Origin: Lepidodermella squamata
Taxonomy: Eukaryota > Animalia > Gastrotricha
Assembly: GCA_047495785.1 (NCBI GenBank)
Contig: JBLDXI010000017.1
Span: forward strand, 1,488,001-1,552,000
DNA: 64,000 bases
Reading direction: 5' to 3'
Each line of letters begins with the position of its first letter. Within the stretch, counting starts at the first letter, position 1. Position numbers and translations under genes: made by a program. Below are positions 3,606 to 14,559 of the stretch, one piece after another. Under the pieces are notes generated by a model, which saw only the letters and a program-made list of their open reading frames with translations, searched no databases and had not been told where the DNA came from.

Positions 3606-4604
3606 ATGAGTTTCCATTATTATAATTACTACGATGACGACAGTGATGCCGAGGAAGATAATGCATCCGAAAGGTATTCTACCTTATCTAATGTAAAATA
3701 TTTTATTCATGAGTTGCGTTGAAGCTCCAGTGATGGAATTGGGGTTCCTGATGACATCGTCCTATCGGACGGTGCAACAGGTGGCAAAAGACGATTTCGA
3801 TTAGAAAAGCCGCGCAGTCGAAGCTCTAGCCGTGAGAGCGCACATATTCGTAGTTCAGCAGAATCGGCCAATCCGGAAAATACTTCTAGTGCATCTGGAA
3901 TAGAAGATGACATGGAAAGAGAATTGAATGAAACTTTGCGTGAAGCTCAAGCGGAGTATCATCGACAGATCGGGACTGATAACCCACCGAATAATAATGT
4001 TACCGCGATTGTCAAGTCAGATCCTTCAAAAGATGTCGCTAAGAAAAAATACGATGACATTTACTTCGATTCTGACGAAGAGGACGGCGCCGCAAATACG
4101 CAACGAACTGTCAAATCGAATGACGAACTGTTCTACGATCCCGATATGGATGACGCTGATTCCAAGTGGATGGATAAAATTCGGAGACAATATCAAGCTC
4201 CTATTCAGAATCCCACTGGGCAAGGTGCATCTGATCAATCAAAAGCCGCTCCATTGCCTAACAGTGATGCAGTTCTTAATTGTCCCGCATGTATGTCTCT
4301 GCTTTGCGTGGATTGTCAACGACACGAACTTTACTCGCATCAATACCGGGCAATGTTTGTGTTCAATTGTAAAATCGACCGTGAACAACCGATGAAATAC
4401 TCTGAAAAAGGCCCAAAATCAGCCCCGGCGCGTAAATCGCGAAAACGTGCTCATCAAGAAGCCTCCTCTTCATCAGACGCTCCCTCCTCAAGCCAAGGCG
4501 ACTTGTATTGCCCGGTTCATTGCAAAGTCTGCAACACGTGCGTTGCAATGTTTGATACCGATGAGGTCTATCATTTCTTCAACGTCCTTGCCAGTCATTC
4601 CTAA
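3606..4604 (+). CDS. EAPP: E2F-associated phosphoprotein; exons 3606-3673 and 3725-4604
   Basis: Motifs NDELFYDPDMDDADSKW, SDAVLNCPACMSLLCVDCQRHELYSHQYRAMFVFNC and PVHCKVCNTCVAMFDTDEVYHFFNVLASH are typical of EAPP. The short upstream exon splices in frame. Confidence 0.93.
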
Positions 4605-4718
4605 TTTAAAATGGATCTTTCAAGTTCACTCCACTTTTTATATTCGGTGAATTGAATATTTCGATAGAAAAATAATGAATAATTTACAGATGTGCTTGAT
4701 TATGTAGATATTTTACAA

Positions 4719-7700
4719 ATGCTTCTCAAATTGCTGCGCGGAGCCACGCGTTTTGGATGTCGCTGCAAAAGTTCTCAATCTTCCAGCGCGGCTTTTGGCT
4801 TTGAGGAAGTCCACAATGACGAAAATTCAACACTGACTCGAATAACAACGCCGCAACGCATGGATGACACAATTAGACGGCGGCTTGTGTCCCGCCAATT
4901 GCAAGAAGCTGAAGGTGAAAGAAGGCGAAGACTCGGCACTCCGATAATAGCATGTTCCAGACCTGCCTATAATTTGTACAAAGGTCGCCAAACTTGGTCG
5001 AAAACCACACCAATTACAACACTGGCATCTCATGGTTGGAAAAATATGAGGTCTAAGGGTGATCAATTTACGATAAATGCTTTCAGCAAACGTGATTTTT
5101 TCTTGAAATCGGAGAAAGATGATTCGGACACCATCACCTTTTCAAGTCTTTCTGCCATAAGTCCCAAAATTTCCGATTGTCTGAGTTCAAAATTCGAGAT
5201 AAATCGCATGACTAATATACAAGAATTGGTTATTCCATCGATATTGCGCGGCGATAACGTTCAGTTTGCGTCTGAAAACGGTTCTGGCAAAACTCTTGCT
5301 TATTTAATTCCGCTGGCTCAACTTTCTATGGAATCAAGTGGCCATTCAGTCATTCTAGTTCCTGGGCGGGAGCTTGTCGGCCAGGTTTCGAGAATAATTC
5401 AGCATATGAATCTCCCGTTTTTCAATGATTCGAATGTAACTGTCACAACACCCCTCACTTTCCTGAGAAACTTCGACGAAACTCGAGATGTCAAGCATTT
5501 AGTTGTTGATGACGCTGATACGTTGCTAGACGATAGTTTTGCAAAATCCGTCGGTGATGTTTTCAATATTTGGTCCGAGAGCGAGCAAAAACCGCAAGTG
5601 ATTTTTGCCTCGGCGACGCTGCCAACTGCTTTAACCGAAGTTGTTGGACGCTATTTTTCTGGCATTGACTTTGTGTCGTTGACAACTAAGCGAATCCATC
5701 GTCTTCCTTCGCACGTTTCGCACAAATTCATCCGATGCGGACCTTCTCAAAAAAGCGGTGAGTGATATTTTTCAGTAATATAATGCATCTAATGGCCCGG
5801 TTGATTCTGTTTGTCGTGGAACGTGAAGATTCTAAATAACTAATGAACTATTATCAAGATCGTAAAATCAGAAAAAAAATCGGTCTGATCTGATAAAATA
5901 AGTCGACTGTAGCGCAGAAATTTTGGTAAATCGTGCGCTTGGTTCGCAATATTCTGATGTGGTCTAATGCACAAAATTGCGCAGAATTTATTTGATTTTG
6001 TTTTTTTTTCCTGCTTTTTGCACCTTTTGCTGCGTTAATCACGCTTTGAAGCCTGCTACTTGCAGGGGACCCGGTAAAATTCTAAACATACCGCAAAATT
6101 AAAAAATCTAAACTAATGTGTTTTTCGTGGTTCATTGATTAAATTCAATGTTGTGAGGTTGTGTATGAATAGTGGAAGATCCTCCCGACGCTTCTGTTCG
6201 CTTCTGTTCGACGGATATTCCTAAATCGGAGTTCAGTTACAAATTGAAAAAAATGAATATACTTGCAGCAACCTTGAGGCACATTTGGCGACACTGAATA
6301 GATGAAGTGGAGTTCAGATGAGGAATTGTTCCCAATTTGCAAGCTTCTGGATAATTCTTTGGTACAAAACTATTAGGCACCATCTTCCCTCTGTTTTCTA
6401 ATGGTTGGTATTCTTTCCCTTGAGCCTGACCTATAATTTGGTCGAATATTTGAATATTTACGGTACATCTACCGTTCAAAAAGACTTTTGTCTTGGGCCA
6501 ATTTTCGATATTGCAGAAGGCAAGATGCAATAAAAACGGCTCCATTTGAACAAAAATCAGACGATGTTGTGAAGTTTGCGATTAGCGCAATGCGCATGCT
6601 CGATATCTTCGAATATTAAAATGTTGGCTGATGCAAATATAAATCCAAGAAATTAATTAGCAAATACGAAACATACCTGGAATTCGGTGACATGGATATG
6701 ACAAACGACACGACCGAATATCTGACGCTTGACGATGTCGTTGAGAATTTCTTTCAATTTCAACCGAAACACTCTTGCGCACAGATCGGGTCGATCTGAC
6801 GCCTCTTCACTGACTTTTCTGACGGCTCTTAGAGATTTCACGCTTGTAACACCGTTAGAAGTTAACATTCGTTAATTTGGCGTACCTTAAGTACTACCTT
6901 AAGTGGTGTCAATTTCGACTGATCCAACATTTTTTATTTCGAGCTTCGCTGCCCCTTCCAAAACTGTCACCATGGGAGCCAAGACCGAAAGGATTTCTCG
7001 TCTGCCATCCGACTTCCAGTGGTCGCATACTATCGTACACTTTTCGCACGATTTTACGCCCGCTCCTGCAGCAAGTTGTAACATGTGATCCATTTAAGCG
7101 GTTCAGCCGGATAACAGACTTTAGAAATTATACTTGCTCACTGGGTCTCGGCGAGCACCAATTTGAAAAGATGAATTAATGAGAGTGAGATGACTAAAAA
7201 ATAATGGCCGTATTTGCATGCGGTTATTTCGGTTAATACCACGGTTCTAGCGACCGGCGAACCGAACTCGGTTATTTTTTAACCGCGGCATCTCTACCCC
7301 GAGTTACGAACCAGCTCCTTCTGAAATTAAGGGATAGCCATATAATTGTATTTATGTGCCATTTCAAAATCGAAGATAGCAGAATGCGAAAATTGTCAGC
7401 ATTTTCACCTTTTTTACATCGCAAAACCGATGAGCACTGTGGCGAAAATATTAAAATACGTGAAAATGTTAAAAAGTAGTTGGCAATTTCGATTCCTCAT
7501 TATCATGCAATATTATCGCAATAATCAGGAAAAATTTAAAATTTCGCATTGTTATTCCCCATAGTCTTCGCCTGCATATCATTTCTGGGTGTTGAAGTTC
7601 ACCAAAAGGGCTCGAGAGCTCTAGACTTATTTTCACTGGCTGAATTTATTCAATGATCTACCAATATTATTATCTATTTTCCTTTATTTAGAATTGATAG

Positions 7701-8305
7701 TCCAGCTGGTGCGAAAAGTTCGAAATTCGCCTGTGATTGTTTTCTGCAACAAAGCCCCAGCCGTAACCTACGTCGTTCATCAACTGATCGAAAACGGCAT
7801 TCCAGCTGAAAACATAGCCGCTCTTGAAGGCCGCATGCCGGGCGAGGAGCGTGATGCGCAGTGGAACGCCTTCAAAACCGGTCAACGGTCAATTCTAGTC
7901 GCAACCGATCTGGCATCGCGCGGACTAGACACGCCTCATGTTCGGCACGTCATTAATTTCGACATGCCTCGGCAAGTTTCCGACTACCTGCATCGATCGG
8001 GAAGACTCGGCCGAGCTTGCCCGGTGGCAACCAGCGCGAATTATCTGGTTACGAGTTTGGTTACTTACCCTGCGGACGTTGAACTGGTTTGGCAGTTGGA
8101 AGGCGCGGCTCGGCGGGCGGCTTCGGGTGCGCCCGAAACGCCGCTGCCAGATGTGGACGCGAACATCAAGCGGCAACTCGTTCAACTGCAGCAACAGCGC
8201 GAATTAGCCGCCGAAAATGCGCAGCGAGATGATGAAACCGAAGCTCCGCTGCCTTTTCCACGCAAGTTTTTCGGCGACTCGAACGACGAAATTTTTACGA
8301 AATGA
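4719..8305 (+). CDS. DDX28: DEAD-box RNA helicase, DDX28-like (mitochondrial); exons 4719-5757 and 7692-8305
   Basis: Presequence-like N-terminus and LASHGWKN..SKGDQFTI segment; Q motif, GSGKT, D-D-A-D, SAT, ATDLASRGLD and YLHRSGRLGR. Donor G|gtgagt and acceptor tttag|AA are in phase. Confidence 0.88.
6677..6805 (-). mobile_element. Helitron Rep (rolling-circle initiator) fragment inside the DDX28 intron
   Basis: Translation SDRPDLCARVFRLKLKEILNDIVKRQIFGRVVCHIHVTEFQ matches the Helitron Rep block that precedes EFQKRGLPHxH. Confidence 0.85.
7220..7296 (-). mobile_element. Orphan hAT-like transposon end
   Basis: The minus strand starts TAGAGATGCCGCGGTT, followed by clustered CGGTT/AACCG subterminal motifs like those of the 28152-28965 element. 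No partner end was found. Confidence 0.45.
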
Positions 8306-8349
8306 ACATTATATTTGGGACATTCTATTTTTTAAGCTGCCTCTTCGGT

Positions 8350-8426
8350 AGCCAGTTTCCATCGTGTGTATCTCGGACTGTACTTTTTTACTGATTAAAA
8401 TTCTGAGATCAGGGTGAAAACTGGCC
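8350..8426 (+). ncRNA. bantam: bantam-family pre-miRNA copy 1; predicted mature 3p ~8404-8426 UGAGAUCAGGGUGAAAACUGGCC
   Basis: The 3' arm starts with UGAGAUCA and contains UGAAAACUG, as in bantam. The 5' arm gccagtttcc...atctcgga is complementary. Confidence 0.85.
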
Positions 8427-8539
8427 ATGAAACAGGCTTAATCGGCTTTTATTGAAAGAATCAACTTTTTAAGCTGGACTTTTTAAAATGTGTGCAATTT
8501 TAATATTTCCTTTTTATTTCCAATCATGCAACACACGAC

Positions 8540-8628
8540 AGTCGGTTCTCACCGTGCATCTCTGACTTGATTTATTCATCTGCTATTTCCGGCGAGAAAA
8601 GTGTCTGAGATCAAGGTGAAAACTGGCC
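8540..8628 (+). ncRNA. bantam: bantam-family pre-miRNA copy 2; mature ~8606-8628 UGAGAUCAAGGUGAAAACUGGCC
   Basis: The 5' arm gtcggttctcaccgtgcatctctgac pairs with the 3' arm across a long loop of about 35 nt. Confidence 0.85.
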
Positions 8629-9093
8629 GCCGTTTTTGTTCCGGTTCCGATGAACAGCAGTGATTTTTTGCTGAAGGCCGATCACGCCACCATTTTAGCT
8701 GCTCAGTGCAAAGCAATTTCGGACAGATTTTTTGCAGTGGTTGCTGCGTAGCTGTTTTTGTTTTCGACGGCGACACAGGGCCTAATTAGGTTGATCAGAG
8801 CCGACCCAGCCGCTGCGACCCAGAAAAAAATCGGTCACAGGGCGCGGCGTGTGGACTTATTATTACTCGAACGTCAGCAATTATTACGAACACGCCGCTC
8901 GCGTTTCGAAAAGCACGTTGCACACATCACATTCGACCACGCCACGTGTCGTTTAAAAGTGCGCAGTCAAACACACAGATTCGTCATTCGTCTTTTTGCC
9001 TCGATAAATCGCAAATCATTTTGCTACTGTCGCGACAAATCGCGGACCAGTATTTTTGCCTCTCGACTATCATAACAGCTTAGCTGTCAGCCT

Positions 9094-9170
9094 GTCGGTT
9101 TTCACCTTGCATCTGGGACGGAAATTCCTAGCGATTTCACAACTGTCTGAGATCAAAGTGAAAACTGGCT
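9094..9170 (+). ncRNA. bantam: bantam-family pre-miRNA copy 3; mature ~9148-9170 UGAGAUCAAAGUGAAAACUGGCU
   Basis: The 5' arm gtcggttttcaccttgcatctgggac pairs with the 3' arm and resembles the CGGUUUUC start of bantam star strands. Confidence 0.87.
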
Positions 9171-9252
9171 GGTGTCAGTTATTTCAATAAGGTAGCGGTA
9201 TTTAAAATTTCACATTTTATTGTTACAGTTTTCAGTTCTGATCAAAATGTTT

Positions 9253-9319
9253 GTCGGTTTTCTCTTGGTCCATCTCGGATGTGTTGTAAATCAGTCTGAG
9301 ATCTGAGTGAGAACTGGCT
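9253..9319 (+). ncRNA. bantam: bantam-family pre-miRNA copy 4 (position-8 variant); mature ~9297-9319 UGAGAUCUGAGUGAGAACUGGCU
   Basis: The 5' arm gtcggttttctcttggtccatctcgga pairs with the 3' arm; same architecture as copies 1-3. Confidence 0.8.
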
Positions 9320-12300
9320 AACAACAGATCTAAGCGGCATTTGTCATTCACACTATTTCCGGATGTTCGTTACGCTCTGCATGCTCGGCTCACCTTCGGC
9401 CCGCCGGGCATGCGGGTAACACCCAGACGCGTCGTAAAATTAGAACTGAGCTAGGCCGCGGATAATCTTTCGCGTGTGTCGGCCGCGCCTTTGAAAGTGC
9501 GGTATGAAAACGGATTATCGCATTTTTGCGAAACGCACCGCGTCGTAAAATTTTCAAGCGCGCGGCTCTCAAGCCATAAAACGCAAACCCATTTAACTAC
9601 ACACTCATCACGCGCGTTGAGTGGCAAAATTCCGCGGAGATTGACGTTAGAAACTCGACATTTTTGACACTCACACCAACAACGGCGAATTGCTAAACTG
9701 AGCCGATTAGCCAACGATGAGTCCTATCAATTGCTACATCGCCCAGCCTTTGTTCTCGCAGCGCCCGGGTTCGAGTGGGAACTACTGCGCTAGACGATTC
9801 TAATCCAGTGAGTCGTTGCGGGAGGCACGGCGACAATGAGGGTGGGGTATTGAGATTTTATTTTCCTTTTCTTTCTTTGAAATTTACTTGAGATCGATGA
9901 GGTAATGATGATGATGAAAAAATTGATAAACGTGTTTCACAGCGTGAGGTGGCTGTTTACGCTCCAGCTTAAAACTTGTCGCGACGACACACGCAGCCAC
10001 TTGAAATCAACTTGTTTATTTTTCGAGATAACACAAACATCGACAGATTTGCAGCACCGATAGTGACCCGGACATGTTTGCGCCCCAGATTATTTTTTGC
10101 TGAAAGTGAAATGATTTGTTATGACGCAGCTCAGTGTCAGATAAACACCATAATCCGGACGCTAATTTGATAGCAAAACTTTGACCCGAATTTTGAGTGA
10201 CCTACTTAACGGTTGGGCGCCGCAATAAAATCGAACACGATTGATGGCTGTGGCTGGTTGCTGTCAGGGGCCGGCCTTCCGAAACAGCGAAACATAAAAC
10301 GGGTTTAATTACCCCTTGACCACCACGGTTTGGCGGGAGTAGCCGGGGCCGGAAGACGGCGACAAGCCTGGCTAATTACGGCGGGGTTTGATAACCAGCC
10401 AAAAAGGCGTGCGTTGTTTACGATTGCAATTAGTAGCAGTTAAGGAGGCTGCTGCTGCCGCTGATACCTACCTCGTGGGCGGGTTTGTTTTGACACAAGA
10501 TAACACAGCCGTCGTCTGAACTTTTACCGCCAACACTACCACGCGCGGCCCATGAGAACGCGAACAAATGTCAAAGGACCACTACCTGTGAACTCAATTA
10601 AGGTGGCTTGGCAACAACAACAACAAATAATTACTGCTTCTGACTGCGGAAAAAAAACACCTGAATTGATGCACAACAATTTTTTATTACTGTAATATTG
10701 ATGTAAATGTTCACATAATAATATTATGATTTTTGTTGACATACTGAAGCTCAGCAGATTCTTGCCGCCTTATACACAAAAACAAGAACTTCAGCACACA
10801 TAATTTTTCATTGTGAGGACCCGCGCTCAGAATAATGTTAGGTATTGCTTTTCGCGAATATAGACATGTATTTGCGATAATAATATCATATTACTAGTAA
10901 TTATGGAAACAGAAAAAATGAAATGAAACAATTCATTCCTTCAATCAGCAGTTATTCCACTCCAATATAGGGTATACACAGATTTGAGCTGAATAGATTA
11001 AGGCGGTTATAACTAGACTACAGAAGACATCAGACCGGATTTATGAGTTTGCAAAATTATGAACACCCTATCATCACTTATTTCCCCGATTTTTAAATAA
11101 GAGAGACAGATAGAGAGACAGTCAGCCAAAACAAAAAAACACAGTGAGCGAACAAAAACGACGACCTTAAATTACACGCAGTGATGAGAGACAAAAGCAG
11201 ACAACAATTTGTTCTTCGATCCTACTACACTGTTAAATTAACGAACGCGAATAATTTAATCGTGAGACGGAATTTCAGTTTTTCATCATATCGACTTGAA
11301 AATTGATACCATAATTGAAAATACAGGTGAATTCGTTGCGAAGTTATTTTTCATGCGAAGAAATCATCGAATGGGAACATGGAACTAATAAGGCGGATGG
11401 AATGGACATTATAGTTTATCAGAAGAATATAGATTTCTTTTTTTTGCAGCAGCAGATGGGGTCGATTAATAACGTTAGAATAAATTTTCAGGAAGAAGCG
11501 CGAAACTGGTGATGATTGTTAAGTAGTAGATTTTGTTTTTCTTGTTTAGAAGATTCGATTCCAACACATTTCAAGTAAATGCACAGAGCGTAAAATAAAA
11601 ATCACACAAGTTAGTTTTATATTAGACGCGTTATGTAGCAGAATATTATGGATTTTTTTACACACACTTTACGCAATAATATTAGATTCATGAATATATA
11701 TTTTGAATATATTTATATATAATATTTTTCAGTAATGGTACGAATAATAACAGTAATTTTTGTTAATGTGCGATTATTATATTATTATATTATACAAGAC
11801 AGGTGAAATGTTCGTAACGTATCGAATGTAGAAGTAAAAAGCGTTGCCGCCTTAAAATTTCACGGAAACTTCAAAGCTTCAACGTTTAAAAACCAGAATA
11901 TTTCGCCTTTTGTTTTACGGTGCCGTGTGGTGGCGGTGCAAAAGACAAAATTAACAACTCAACAAGAATAATGGTACACGAAGAATATATAGATTTCACA
12001 TCTTTTTGAAATTTGAAATATATCGGAATTAAATTTATCTGGAAAAACTCCGACGATACAAATTTTCGAACCCCTTCAACGCATATTTACACGAAAAAAC
12101 GACGACCCGTTTTATTACGAAGGGGTCAAAAAGAGCAGCTAACAATATAATATTTAGATTTATGTATCAATATATATCTCTATTGAATAATTTTCCATTA
12201 TATACACGTATAACACCGCCGTAAACGCCGCAAAAATTTAAGAAATGAGGAAGAAGACGGAGAAAAATATCATAATCAGATTGTGCGATTCTCATCAGAT

Positions 12301-13039
12301 TGGGACAAGTTGATTTTTCATATATTTTTCATGTTTATCATGGATGGTAATAAGTACAAAACAAAAATTCAACACGCCCAATCTCAAAAAGGAGGAACAA
12401 AAGCTATGTGATAGTAATATTATGCTTTTAAGGTGGACAATCTAATATCGGCGTGATTTTGCTCTCCATATATTTATACAAAAACAAATCAAACAAACAA
12501 AAACCAACAACACCAATGTTTTACGCACAACGATTATAACACGATAATATACTCGGAATTCGATTTTAATATTTTCAATTTTAATTAGTTACAATTGGAA
12601 GAATATAGATAAGAATAATTTCACTTCGAATGATAGATAGTTAAACAAAAAAACGAGGACAAAAATTGCAAAGCAGATCGTCGACCGGTGGCGGTTGAAA
12701 ATTGCGTTTGACACTCACACATTGCAGCATTGAAAAATTGAGCCGAGTTGGAGCAGACTGAAAAAGCAGCAGAAACTTTGTGCGTTGGAAGTCATGATGA
12801 TGATGTCATTCACAATTTCAAGTTTTTGTTTAAATAAAAAGAGGACGATACACACTCGCGCGATCAGATCAGATCAACCCTCATCAAGAAAAAAATTGTT
12901 GCGTAATTTTTTTTGCACACGCACTCGTAATCAACAATTTGAATTTTTCGAAAATTAATTATTAAGGCGGAGGATTACGTTAATATTATAGTTCTGCGCA
13001 TTGGCGCAATTACTGAAGAATAATTTTGATTTTATCATC

Positions 13040-14559
13040 TCAGTTCGCCATTGACGAGAAGATGGGCAGGCGTCGGCCGTTGAGGAAGCGGCTGCTGACG
13101 TTGTTCGACACTGCCGTTTGGACTAGCGAAGCGGCATTGCGAGGACCCGAGTTTTGACGACGCAGCGCTGCGAGGTTTTGCGAGAGAGCGAGGCGTTCAC
13201 TCAACGCGGCTTGGATTCGCTTCTGCTGCTGCAGCTGCGCGAAGTTCAGCGGCATCTCGTCGGTCGAAATTGTGAGCAAGTGAAGGCGGTCGACAGGCGG
13301 CATCGAGTCCGACATCGAGGTCTGGCGGAGCGGTGGGAACTCGGCGTCGTTGATGACTACCAGCGGTTCCAACTCACCCGCAATCGTGCGCGCTGAAGGC
13401 GAGGTCGAAGAAACACTGGCGTTCGGCGAGCTCAGACCGATACCTGACGATTGAGCCGCGTCGGAACAGGCCGATGAAAGTGACGAGACGGGCGAGACGG
13501 CAGCGGGGCTCGGGCTGAGGAACACAGACTCGGCTGGTTCATCGATGGTGGTCGGCGAAATCGACTCGCCGCGGCCGCTGCTCTCGAGGGTGATCGCCAA
13601 CTGCGTCGGAGGTTTCATCATCTCATCGCCAGAGGTCGACTGCGGGCTCGAGTTCGAGTCATCTTGAGCAGGGTTGTCCAGGTCGAGCAGATGAAGAAAG
13701 TGGCAACGCGGTCCGTACGGGCAGAAGCCGACGGTGTGGAAGGTGCGGCAGTATTCGGTCTTGTACTTCGGATGGCGCGACATTTGCTTTAATTCGTGAC
13801 GGCCGTGGGCGAACTGGCACTTGTCGCCGTACTTGCACTCGCCATTTTCCATGAACGGACGGCACAGCTCAGTCTTGTAGCGGCCGACGAAATCAGCGTT
13901 GTTTTGACCGTTCGCCGCGTCGTTGTTGATCGCCTGCTGCTGTTGCAGCGTCAACGAACCGAAATTTCCCTCATTCGATGAATACGAATCGTGGCGGACC
14001 TTCGAACTGCGCGAGTGGTGTTGAGCCGAATCGCGACCGCTGGTTTCATTGCGACTGCGAAAATTCTGCCCGCGCCTATAAAAAAAATCCACCTTAAAAA
14101 TTCGCCGCAATAAAAAATAACGCGTTTTTTTACCTGAAACGGTTCGAGCGCGGCGGTTGTTGGAAGGAGCTGCCGTTTTTGCGGGGCGATGGCGAAGCGA
14201 CATGAAAGGTGGAAATCGGCGGAAAATCGTCACCGGTGTTGTTGCTGTTCGTGTTCGTATCCATGACGTACTCGTCCTTGAAAAACGAACCGCCCGAACC
14301 CGATCGCGGCCGACCGCAATCATCGGCAAACATATCGACATGGTGATTGTGATGATGATTGCTGTGGTGCTGGTATTGATGAAAGTTCGGGCCGGAGAAC
14401 GAAGAGCTAACAGGCCGCATTTGAAAGTTTTGCTGTAACAAATCATAAAAAAAGTTATTCATCGTTTTCGCATCACATGAACAAAAAACGTACCACAGAT
14501 TCGAAGAACTTCATATGGTTCTGCTGCATATCTTGACGGTAATCGGCTAGCGAAAGCAT
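13040..14559 (-). CDS. TIS11: TIS11/ZFP36-family tandem CCCH ARE-binding protein; exons 14559-14494, 14432-14134, 14075-13040
   Basis: Fingers [10 protein letters not shown]...[12 protein letters not shown] and [10 protein letters not shown]...[11 protein letters not shown]; C-terminal RRLPIF CNOT1-binding motif; three in-phase exons. Confidence 0.95.

Follow-up and report, generated by a model that had tools for sequence, protein, structure and literature searches.

Four tandem hairpins directly behind the DDX28 gene of the gastrotrich Lepidodermella squamata are almost certainly canonical, expressed microRNA (miRNA) genes of the bantam family. All four lie on one strand and within 980 nt of each other in the window, by which we mean the whole 64-kb stretch of DNA that was analysed. 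They are Lsq-Bantam-P1 to P4, published in 2019 (Fromm et al., 2019, Noncoding RNA 5:19, PMC6468455), and are thus already known as miRNA genes; what is new is their setting next to DDX28 and the evidence of conservation from a wild relative. The comparison allows a gastrotrich miRNA locus to be viewed across species for the first time, with an apparently older P3/P4 pair and younger P1/P2 copies. In addition, the location of a highly expressed miRNA array 7-14 nt past the 3' terminus of a protein-coding gene offers a simple case in which to study the making of primary miRNA transcripts.

Hairpins, small-RNA reads and family identity

The original prediction, made from the letters of the DNA, described four imperfect hairpins within 1 kb, each with a 3' arm of the form TGAGATC-N4-TGA(A/G)AACTGGC, and exact matches and folds both bear this out. 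A pattern search of the 64-kb window with TGAGATCNNNNTGARAACTGGC returned four exact matches, all on the plus strand, at 8404, 8606, 9148 and 9297, compared with 0 matches in 100 of 100 shuffles; no further copy with up to two mismatches was found elsewhere in the 64 kb. Each TGAGATC-N4-TGARAACTGGC copy forms the 3' arm of an imperfect hairpin, and the folding that had been proposed as a check gave MFE values of -28.5 to -37.1 kcal/mol, with z-scores of -2.7 to -4.6. In the four hairpins, as in the two orthologues described below, pairing involves 19-21 of 22 nt, against a threshold of at least 16 between the duplex arms, and 8-10 extra base pairs extend below the predicted Drosha site in each of the four. 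The claim that conservation is confined to the arms also stands: in the alignment of the four copies the invariant columns fall in the two arms only, and loops and flanks are unalignable.

Hairpin 1 (Lsq-Bantam-P1) spans 8344-8431 on the plus strand, with the mature 3p sequence at 8404-8425, a dominant 20-mer at 8404-8423 and a predicted 5p arm at 8353-8377. Hairpin 2 (Lsq-Bantam-P2; 8535-8633, plus strand) has its star 5p sequence at 8543-8565 and its mature 3p sequence at 8606-8627. In hairpin 3 (Lsq-Bantam-P3; 9085-9177, plus strand) the mature 3p sequence lies at 9148-9169, the dominant 20-mer at 9148-9167 and the predicted 5p arm at 9096-9118. Hairpin 4 (Lsq-Bantam-P4; 9248-9323, plus strand) carries the star 5p sequence at 9255-9279 and the mature 3p sequence at 9297-9318, where position 8 is U rather than A.

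Supplementary File 1 of the 2019 study prints Lsq-Bantam-P1, P2, P3 and P4, and no other Lsq-Bantam gene, at scaffold25_size392769:302281-303242 (minus strand, span 962 nt), each entry showing the precursor with its 30-nt flanks and all small-RNA reads mapped to it (PMC6468455). Precursors and flanks as printed agree letter for letter with the window, with flank matches at 8325-8353, 8625-8653 and 9320-9345; the window can therefore be assigned to L. squamata and hairpins 1-4 equated with P1-P4; the published scaffold differs from the window in a TAGG insertion after window position 9077 and is otherwise identical. The main text does not mention bantam, and in the parts of it that the analysis covered no statement on the DDX28 neighbourhood, on clustering or on orthologues in other gastrotrichs was found (PMC6468455). 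A search of paper full texts with the four mature sequences gave no match, these sequences being printed in the supplement only.

The read evidence used here consists of the tables of that supplement, with positions transferred to the window. P3 is the highest-expressed copy, with 63,176 mature and 0 star reads, followed by P2 (8,616 mature, 4 star), P4 (8,312 mature, 4 star) and P1 (2,358 mature, 0 star) (PMC6468455). Because these published reads map exactly on all four loci, the bantam-family identity that had been proposed can be upheld. The reads of P1-P4 begin at the U of UGAGAUC except for three low-count ones (2-4 counts each), and the homogeneous 5' ends expected at 8404, 8606, 9148 and 9297 are seen in the published tables; MirGeneDB-style annotation asks for such ends among reads of 20-26 nt. 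The further expectation of star reads with 2-nt overhangs held for P2 and P4 but not for P1 and P3, which have no star reads, so that two of the four genes show the reads from both arms that MirGeneDB-style annotation looks for. The published star reads have unique exact matches in the window at the P2 and P4 positions given above, and folding combined with the 2-nt overhang rule predicts 5p arms that agree with them to the base. Relative to the 22-mer, the 3' overhangs of the P2 and P4 duplexes measure 2 nt on the Drosha side as well as on the Dicer side. Each of the four transcript regions thus forms a stem-loop that Drosha cuts about 8-10 bp above the stem base and from which Dicer takes off the loop; the 3' arm, from the U of UGAGAUC onwards, becomes the guide, and nearly all of the 5' arm is lost.

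The 22-mer is thus the Drosha product implied by the star reads, whereas in the published tables 85-95% of the P1-P3 reads, as against 40% of the P4 reads, are a 20-mer ending in AACUG. This excess of 20-mers in P1-P3 could be due to paralogue-specific 3' shortening or trimming. An adapter-trimming artefact was rejected as their source, since P3 and P4 are identical in their last 8 nt and nevertheless differ in length profile.

Positions 2-8 of the mature sequence read GAGAUCA in P1-P3 (UGAGAUCA) and GAGAUCU in P4 (UGAGAUCU), the P4 seed being the same at positions 2-7 and different at position 8. Drosophila has one bantam gene, and nematodes have the mir-80/81/82 family in several copies. The array equals Drosophila bantam (RF00727) in seed, in arm and in the GAAA(G/A)CUG core of the 3' half; it differs in that Drosophila has a single gene and L. 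squamata four in tandem. As in C. elegans mir-80/81/82 (RF00728, clan CL00091), the 3'-arm guide opens with UGAGAUCA, followed by GUGAAA, but the gastrotrich loops are longer (17-40 nt between the arms) and the scores, at 31.4 and 23.1 bits, compare with a gathering threshold of 54.5 bits. The guide with seed GAGAUCA thus sits on the 3' arm, as is characteristic of bantam, and the 3' arm is dominant in the reads. The best Rfam models on hairpins 2 and 3 belong to the bantam clan CL00091 (mir-81 and bantam), the best of these scores being that of hairpin 3 against mir-81 (31.4 bits, E 2.5e-4), and the GUGAAAACUG core can be aligned with the mir-81 and bantam consensus. Nowhere in the window is an Rfam gathering threshold reached (31.4, 24.5 and 23.1 bits versus 54.5 and 61). 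The published curators placed all four genes in family BANTAM (PMC6468455), which is among the protostome families listed by PMC12256650.

Searches for additional members gave no candidates. A fifth bantam hairpin was considered at the seeds at 9889 and 55189 and rejected, as the folds there are no better than shuffles (z 0.06 to 0.79), and a sliding-window fold of 7600-11500 brought up no additional miRNA-like hairpin, either between the four or behind them. Two strong folds, at 9350-9440 and 9480-9570, were discarded as miRNA hairpins because they are GC-rich and not conserved in the relative described below. A direct repeat, CGCGTCGTAAAATT, at 9428-9441 and 9539-9553 brackets the GC-rich fold at 9480-9569 (-37.7 kcal/mol), and the stretch that it flanks has no conserved counterpart in that relative.

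Gene neighbourhood and a syntenic relative

The upstream gene had been named as DDX28, and named best hits and the DEAD and Helicase_C domains agree with this. The DEAD exon (4692-5765, plus strand) contains the Pfam DEAD domain, and its best hits named DDX28 are from molluscs, brachiopods and insects. The last exon together with a 32-nt 3' UTR occupies 7694-8337 on the plus strand; its coding part (7694-8305, stop codon at 8303-8305) holds the Helicase_C domain (Pfam, E 5.5e-26). These exons were searched singly rather than as a joined spliced model, and an exact look-up of four window ORFs in a protein collection gave no match. A transcript contig of run X1 agrees with the window throughout 7691-8337; 7691 is a splice junction and 8337 the end of the contig. 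The stem of hairpin 1 starts at 8351, 46 nt past the stop, or at 8344 when extended, close to the roughly 45 nt that had been estimated; only 7 nt separate the end of the transcript contig from the extended stem.

The best match to DDX28 (43% identical) is on a contig of an ENA metagenome assembly, L009. Its gene order equals that of the window, with Eapp, DDX28, a gap and, on the opposite strand, a tandem CCCH zinc-finger gene. Contigs L010, L012 and L013 are of the same species and have identical hairpins, and L011 is the same contig as L009; L009-L013 are 8-30 kb long and come from ENA ERZ23486787, ERZ23486764, ERZ27333047 and ERZ27332993. The DDX28 proteins of L. squamata and the relative are 43-53% identical, and the relative is presumably another gastrotrich. 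A search for more relatives with the Helicase_C exon recovered one related species only (P0061, four contigs, identical hairpins). L009-L013 provide a usable comparison genome for L. squamata. When JGI metagenome contigs were scanned with TGAGATCANNGTGAAAACTGG, eight loci (L001-L008) came up; these were set aside as chance matches, having neither a hairpin nor a second seed nearby.

In L009 the gap between DDX28 and the zinc-finger gene holds two hairpins, about 800 nt from DDX28, which are orthologues of P3 and P4. The P3 orthologue (L009:10745-10826) is identical in the 3' arm at 25 of 25 positions, and the P4 orthologue (L009:10931-11003) at 24 of 25, with the U at position 8 kept. Between the window and L009, the 3' arms of P3 and P4 are 96-100% identical and the 5' arms 81-86%, compared with 28-40% in loops and 32-48% in spacers. 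Both genes thus show the conserved arms and free loops that MirGeneDB-style annotation takes as characteristic, and no other non-coding stretch is as similar between the two sequences as the block made up of hairpin 3, spacer and hairpin 4. The consensus structure of six hairpins (the four of the window and the two orthologues) has 30 pairs, in which 89% of cells are paired versus 32-52% when the partners are slid. Changes on both sides are seen at 7 pairs, most of which belong to the basal stem and not to the mature sequence, and the covariation score is matched by 1 of 500 shuffles.

No trace of a P1 or P2 orthologue was found in L009. Because the syntenic relative carries only two of the four hairpins, the local expansion that had been proposed for the bantam cluster is supported by the comparison of the two sequences. 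P3 and P4 are probably the older pair, since a distant relative has both at the same genomic place; P2 and then P1 would have arisen later, through local duplication in the interval from DDX28 to P3. This order is suggested by one-letter steps along the array at mature positions 8-11, which read AAAG in P3, AAGG in P2 and AGGG in P1. The absence of P1 and P2 from the relative could also reflect loss there rather than gain in L. squamata.

Clusters of miRNA genes that arose by local duplication include the protostome mir-2 clusters and C. elegans mir-35-41. The gastrotrich array resembles these in that its paralogues share one strand, are spaced 150-550 nt apart and have arms that are conserved and loops that are free to vary. 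It differs in that its first hairpin abuts the 3' end of a protein-coding gene, with which co-transcription is putative.

Transcription of the array

Since P1 starts 7-14 nt past the end of the DDX28 mRNA, its primary transcript should begin inside the DDX28 unit, and with the mRNA ending at 8337 and the stem starting at 8344, the single-stranded flank needed by Microprocessor would come from the DDX28 3' UTR. The primary transcript of P1 would arise most simply by DDX28 read-through. We consider it nearly an even chance that a single polycistronic primary transcript, starting in or upstream of DDX28, contains all four hairpins. The location of the four on the same strand within 980 nt is consistent with this, as is the lack of room for a promoter between the mRNA end and the hairpin 1 stem. 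Pointing the other way are the RNA data, in which run X1 has one contig at the locus and none across 8338-9700, and a candidate internal promoter that is common to both species.

This candidate element (8935-8959, plus strand), about 135 nt before hairpin 3, consists of GACCACGCCACGTG, which includes a CACGTG E-box, followed by TTTAAAAG. In L009 it can be aligned with GCCACGCC...TATAAAAG, which precedes the orthologous hairpin by a similar distance, and in both species CCACGCC and then T(T/A)TAAAAG stand about 135-140 nt before the P3-type hairpin. Judged from these letters, P3 and P4 may be served by their own TATA-like promoter near 8952, in addition to or instead of transcription from the DDX28 side.

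There may accordingly be two transcription units, one supplying P1 and P2 by read-through from DDX28 or from a start inside it, and the other supplying P3 and P4 from the TATA-type promoter, an ancestral arrangement that the relative would have retained. We hold this arrangement as a whole to be a tentative but substantial possibility. The block common to both species argues for it, although the comparison is of two species and the block is short, its identity being 56% over 27 columns against 32-40% in the neighbouring spacer. In the relative the hairpin pair stands away from DDX28, at the distance of about 800 nt noted above, and in L. squamata the variants of run X2 (see below) are absent from the block. 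P3 reads are 7 times those of P2 and 27 times those of P1, which would fit separate promoters, but read numbers of clustered miRNAs often differ through processing efficiency, and the promoter before P3 is itself predicted rather than observed.

It is rather unlikely, when taken as one joint proposition, that the bantam array is the downstream part of an operon-like DDX28 unit and that its products undergo paralogue-specific 3' trimming. Under such an operon-like organization, read-through past a weak DDX28 poly(A) site would make P1 and P2, perhaps even the whole set of four hairpins, available to Microprocessor.

Downstream of the array, GGTTTAATTACCC at 10303-10315 equals the opening 13 letters of the nematode SL1 leader, probably by chance. 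Rfam gave no SL1 match there, and the stretch includes a TAATTA homeodomain-type core.

Copy number, variation and adjacent sequence

That the hairpins are dispersed inverted-repeat copies or chance palindromes, and the small RNAs degradation products or siRNAs, is hardly credible, and no evidence in its favour was found: the four copies in 64 kb all lie inside the cluster, DNA contigs of run X2 cross the hairpins into unique flanks at a depth of 65-76 versus 76-88 on the DDX28 exon, the published reads show one fixed 5' end together with 2-nt overhangs and an extreme bias to one arm, and the arms but not the loops are conserved in the syntenic relative. The original prediction had itself raised the prospect of a dispersed repeat, which is excluded by the restriction of the copies to the cluster and by the contigs of ordinary, single-copy depth that bridge to unique flanks.

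Run X2 also provides a view of variation within the species. All 12 of the 12 variant events at 8340-9330 fall in spacers (P ~0.01 if events are independent, a value limited by their clustering at 8458-8510, which makes them not fully independent). At 9077 X2 contains two alleles, one being that of the window and the other that of the 2019 scaffold with its TAGG insertion, which makes the sequenced stock either heterozygous or mixed at the cluster locus. Sites with two alleles are also seen at 8458-8510, 9025 and 9056.

Other non-coding similarity between the window and L009 takes the form of short blocks. The block GAACTTT..GCCGCCAAC.CTACCACGC at window 10517-10544 and L009:11918-11945 (89% identity over 28 nt) follows the last hairpin at a distance of about 0.9-1.2 kb in each of the two species. 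Three more short blocks, at window 12479-12503, 14485-14547 and 3606-3634, have 87-96% identity with L009. The block at 12479-12503 is A-rich and probably belongs to the 3' UTR of the tandem CCCH zinc-finger (TTP-like) gene that occupies 13040-14446 on the minus strand.
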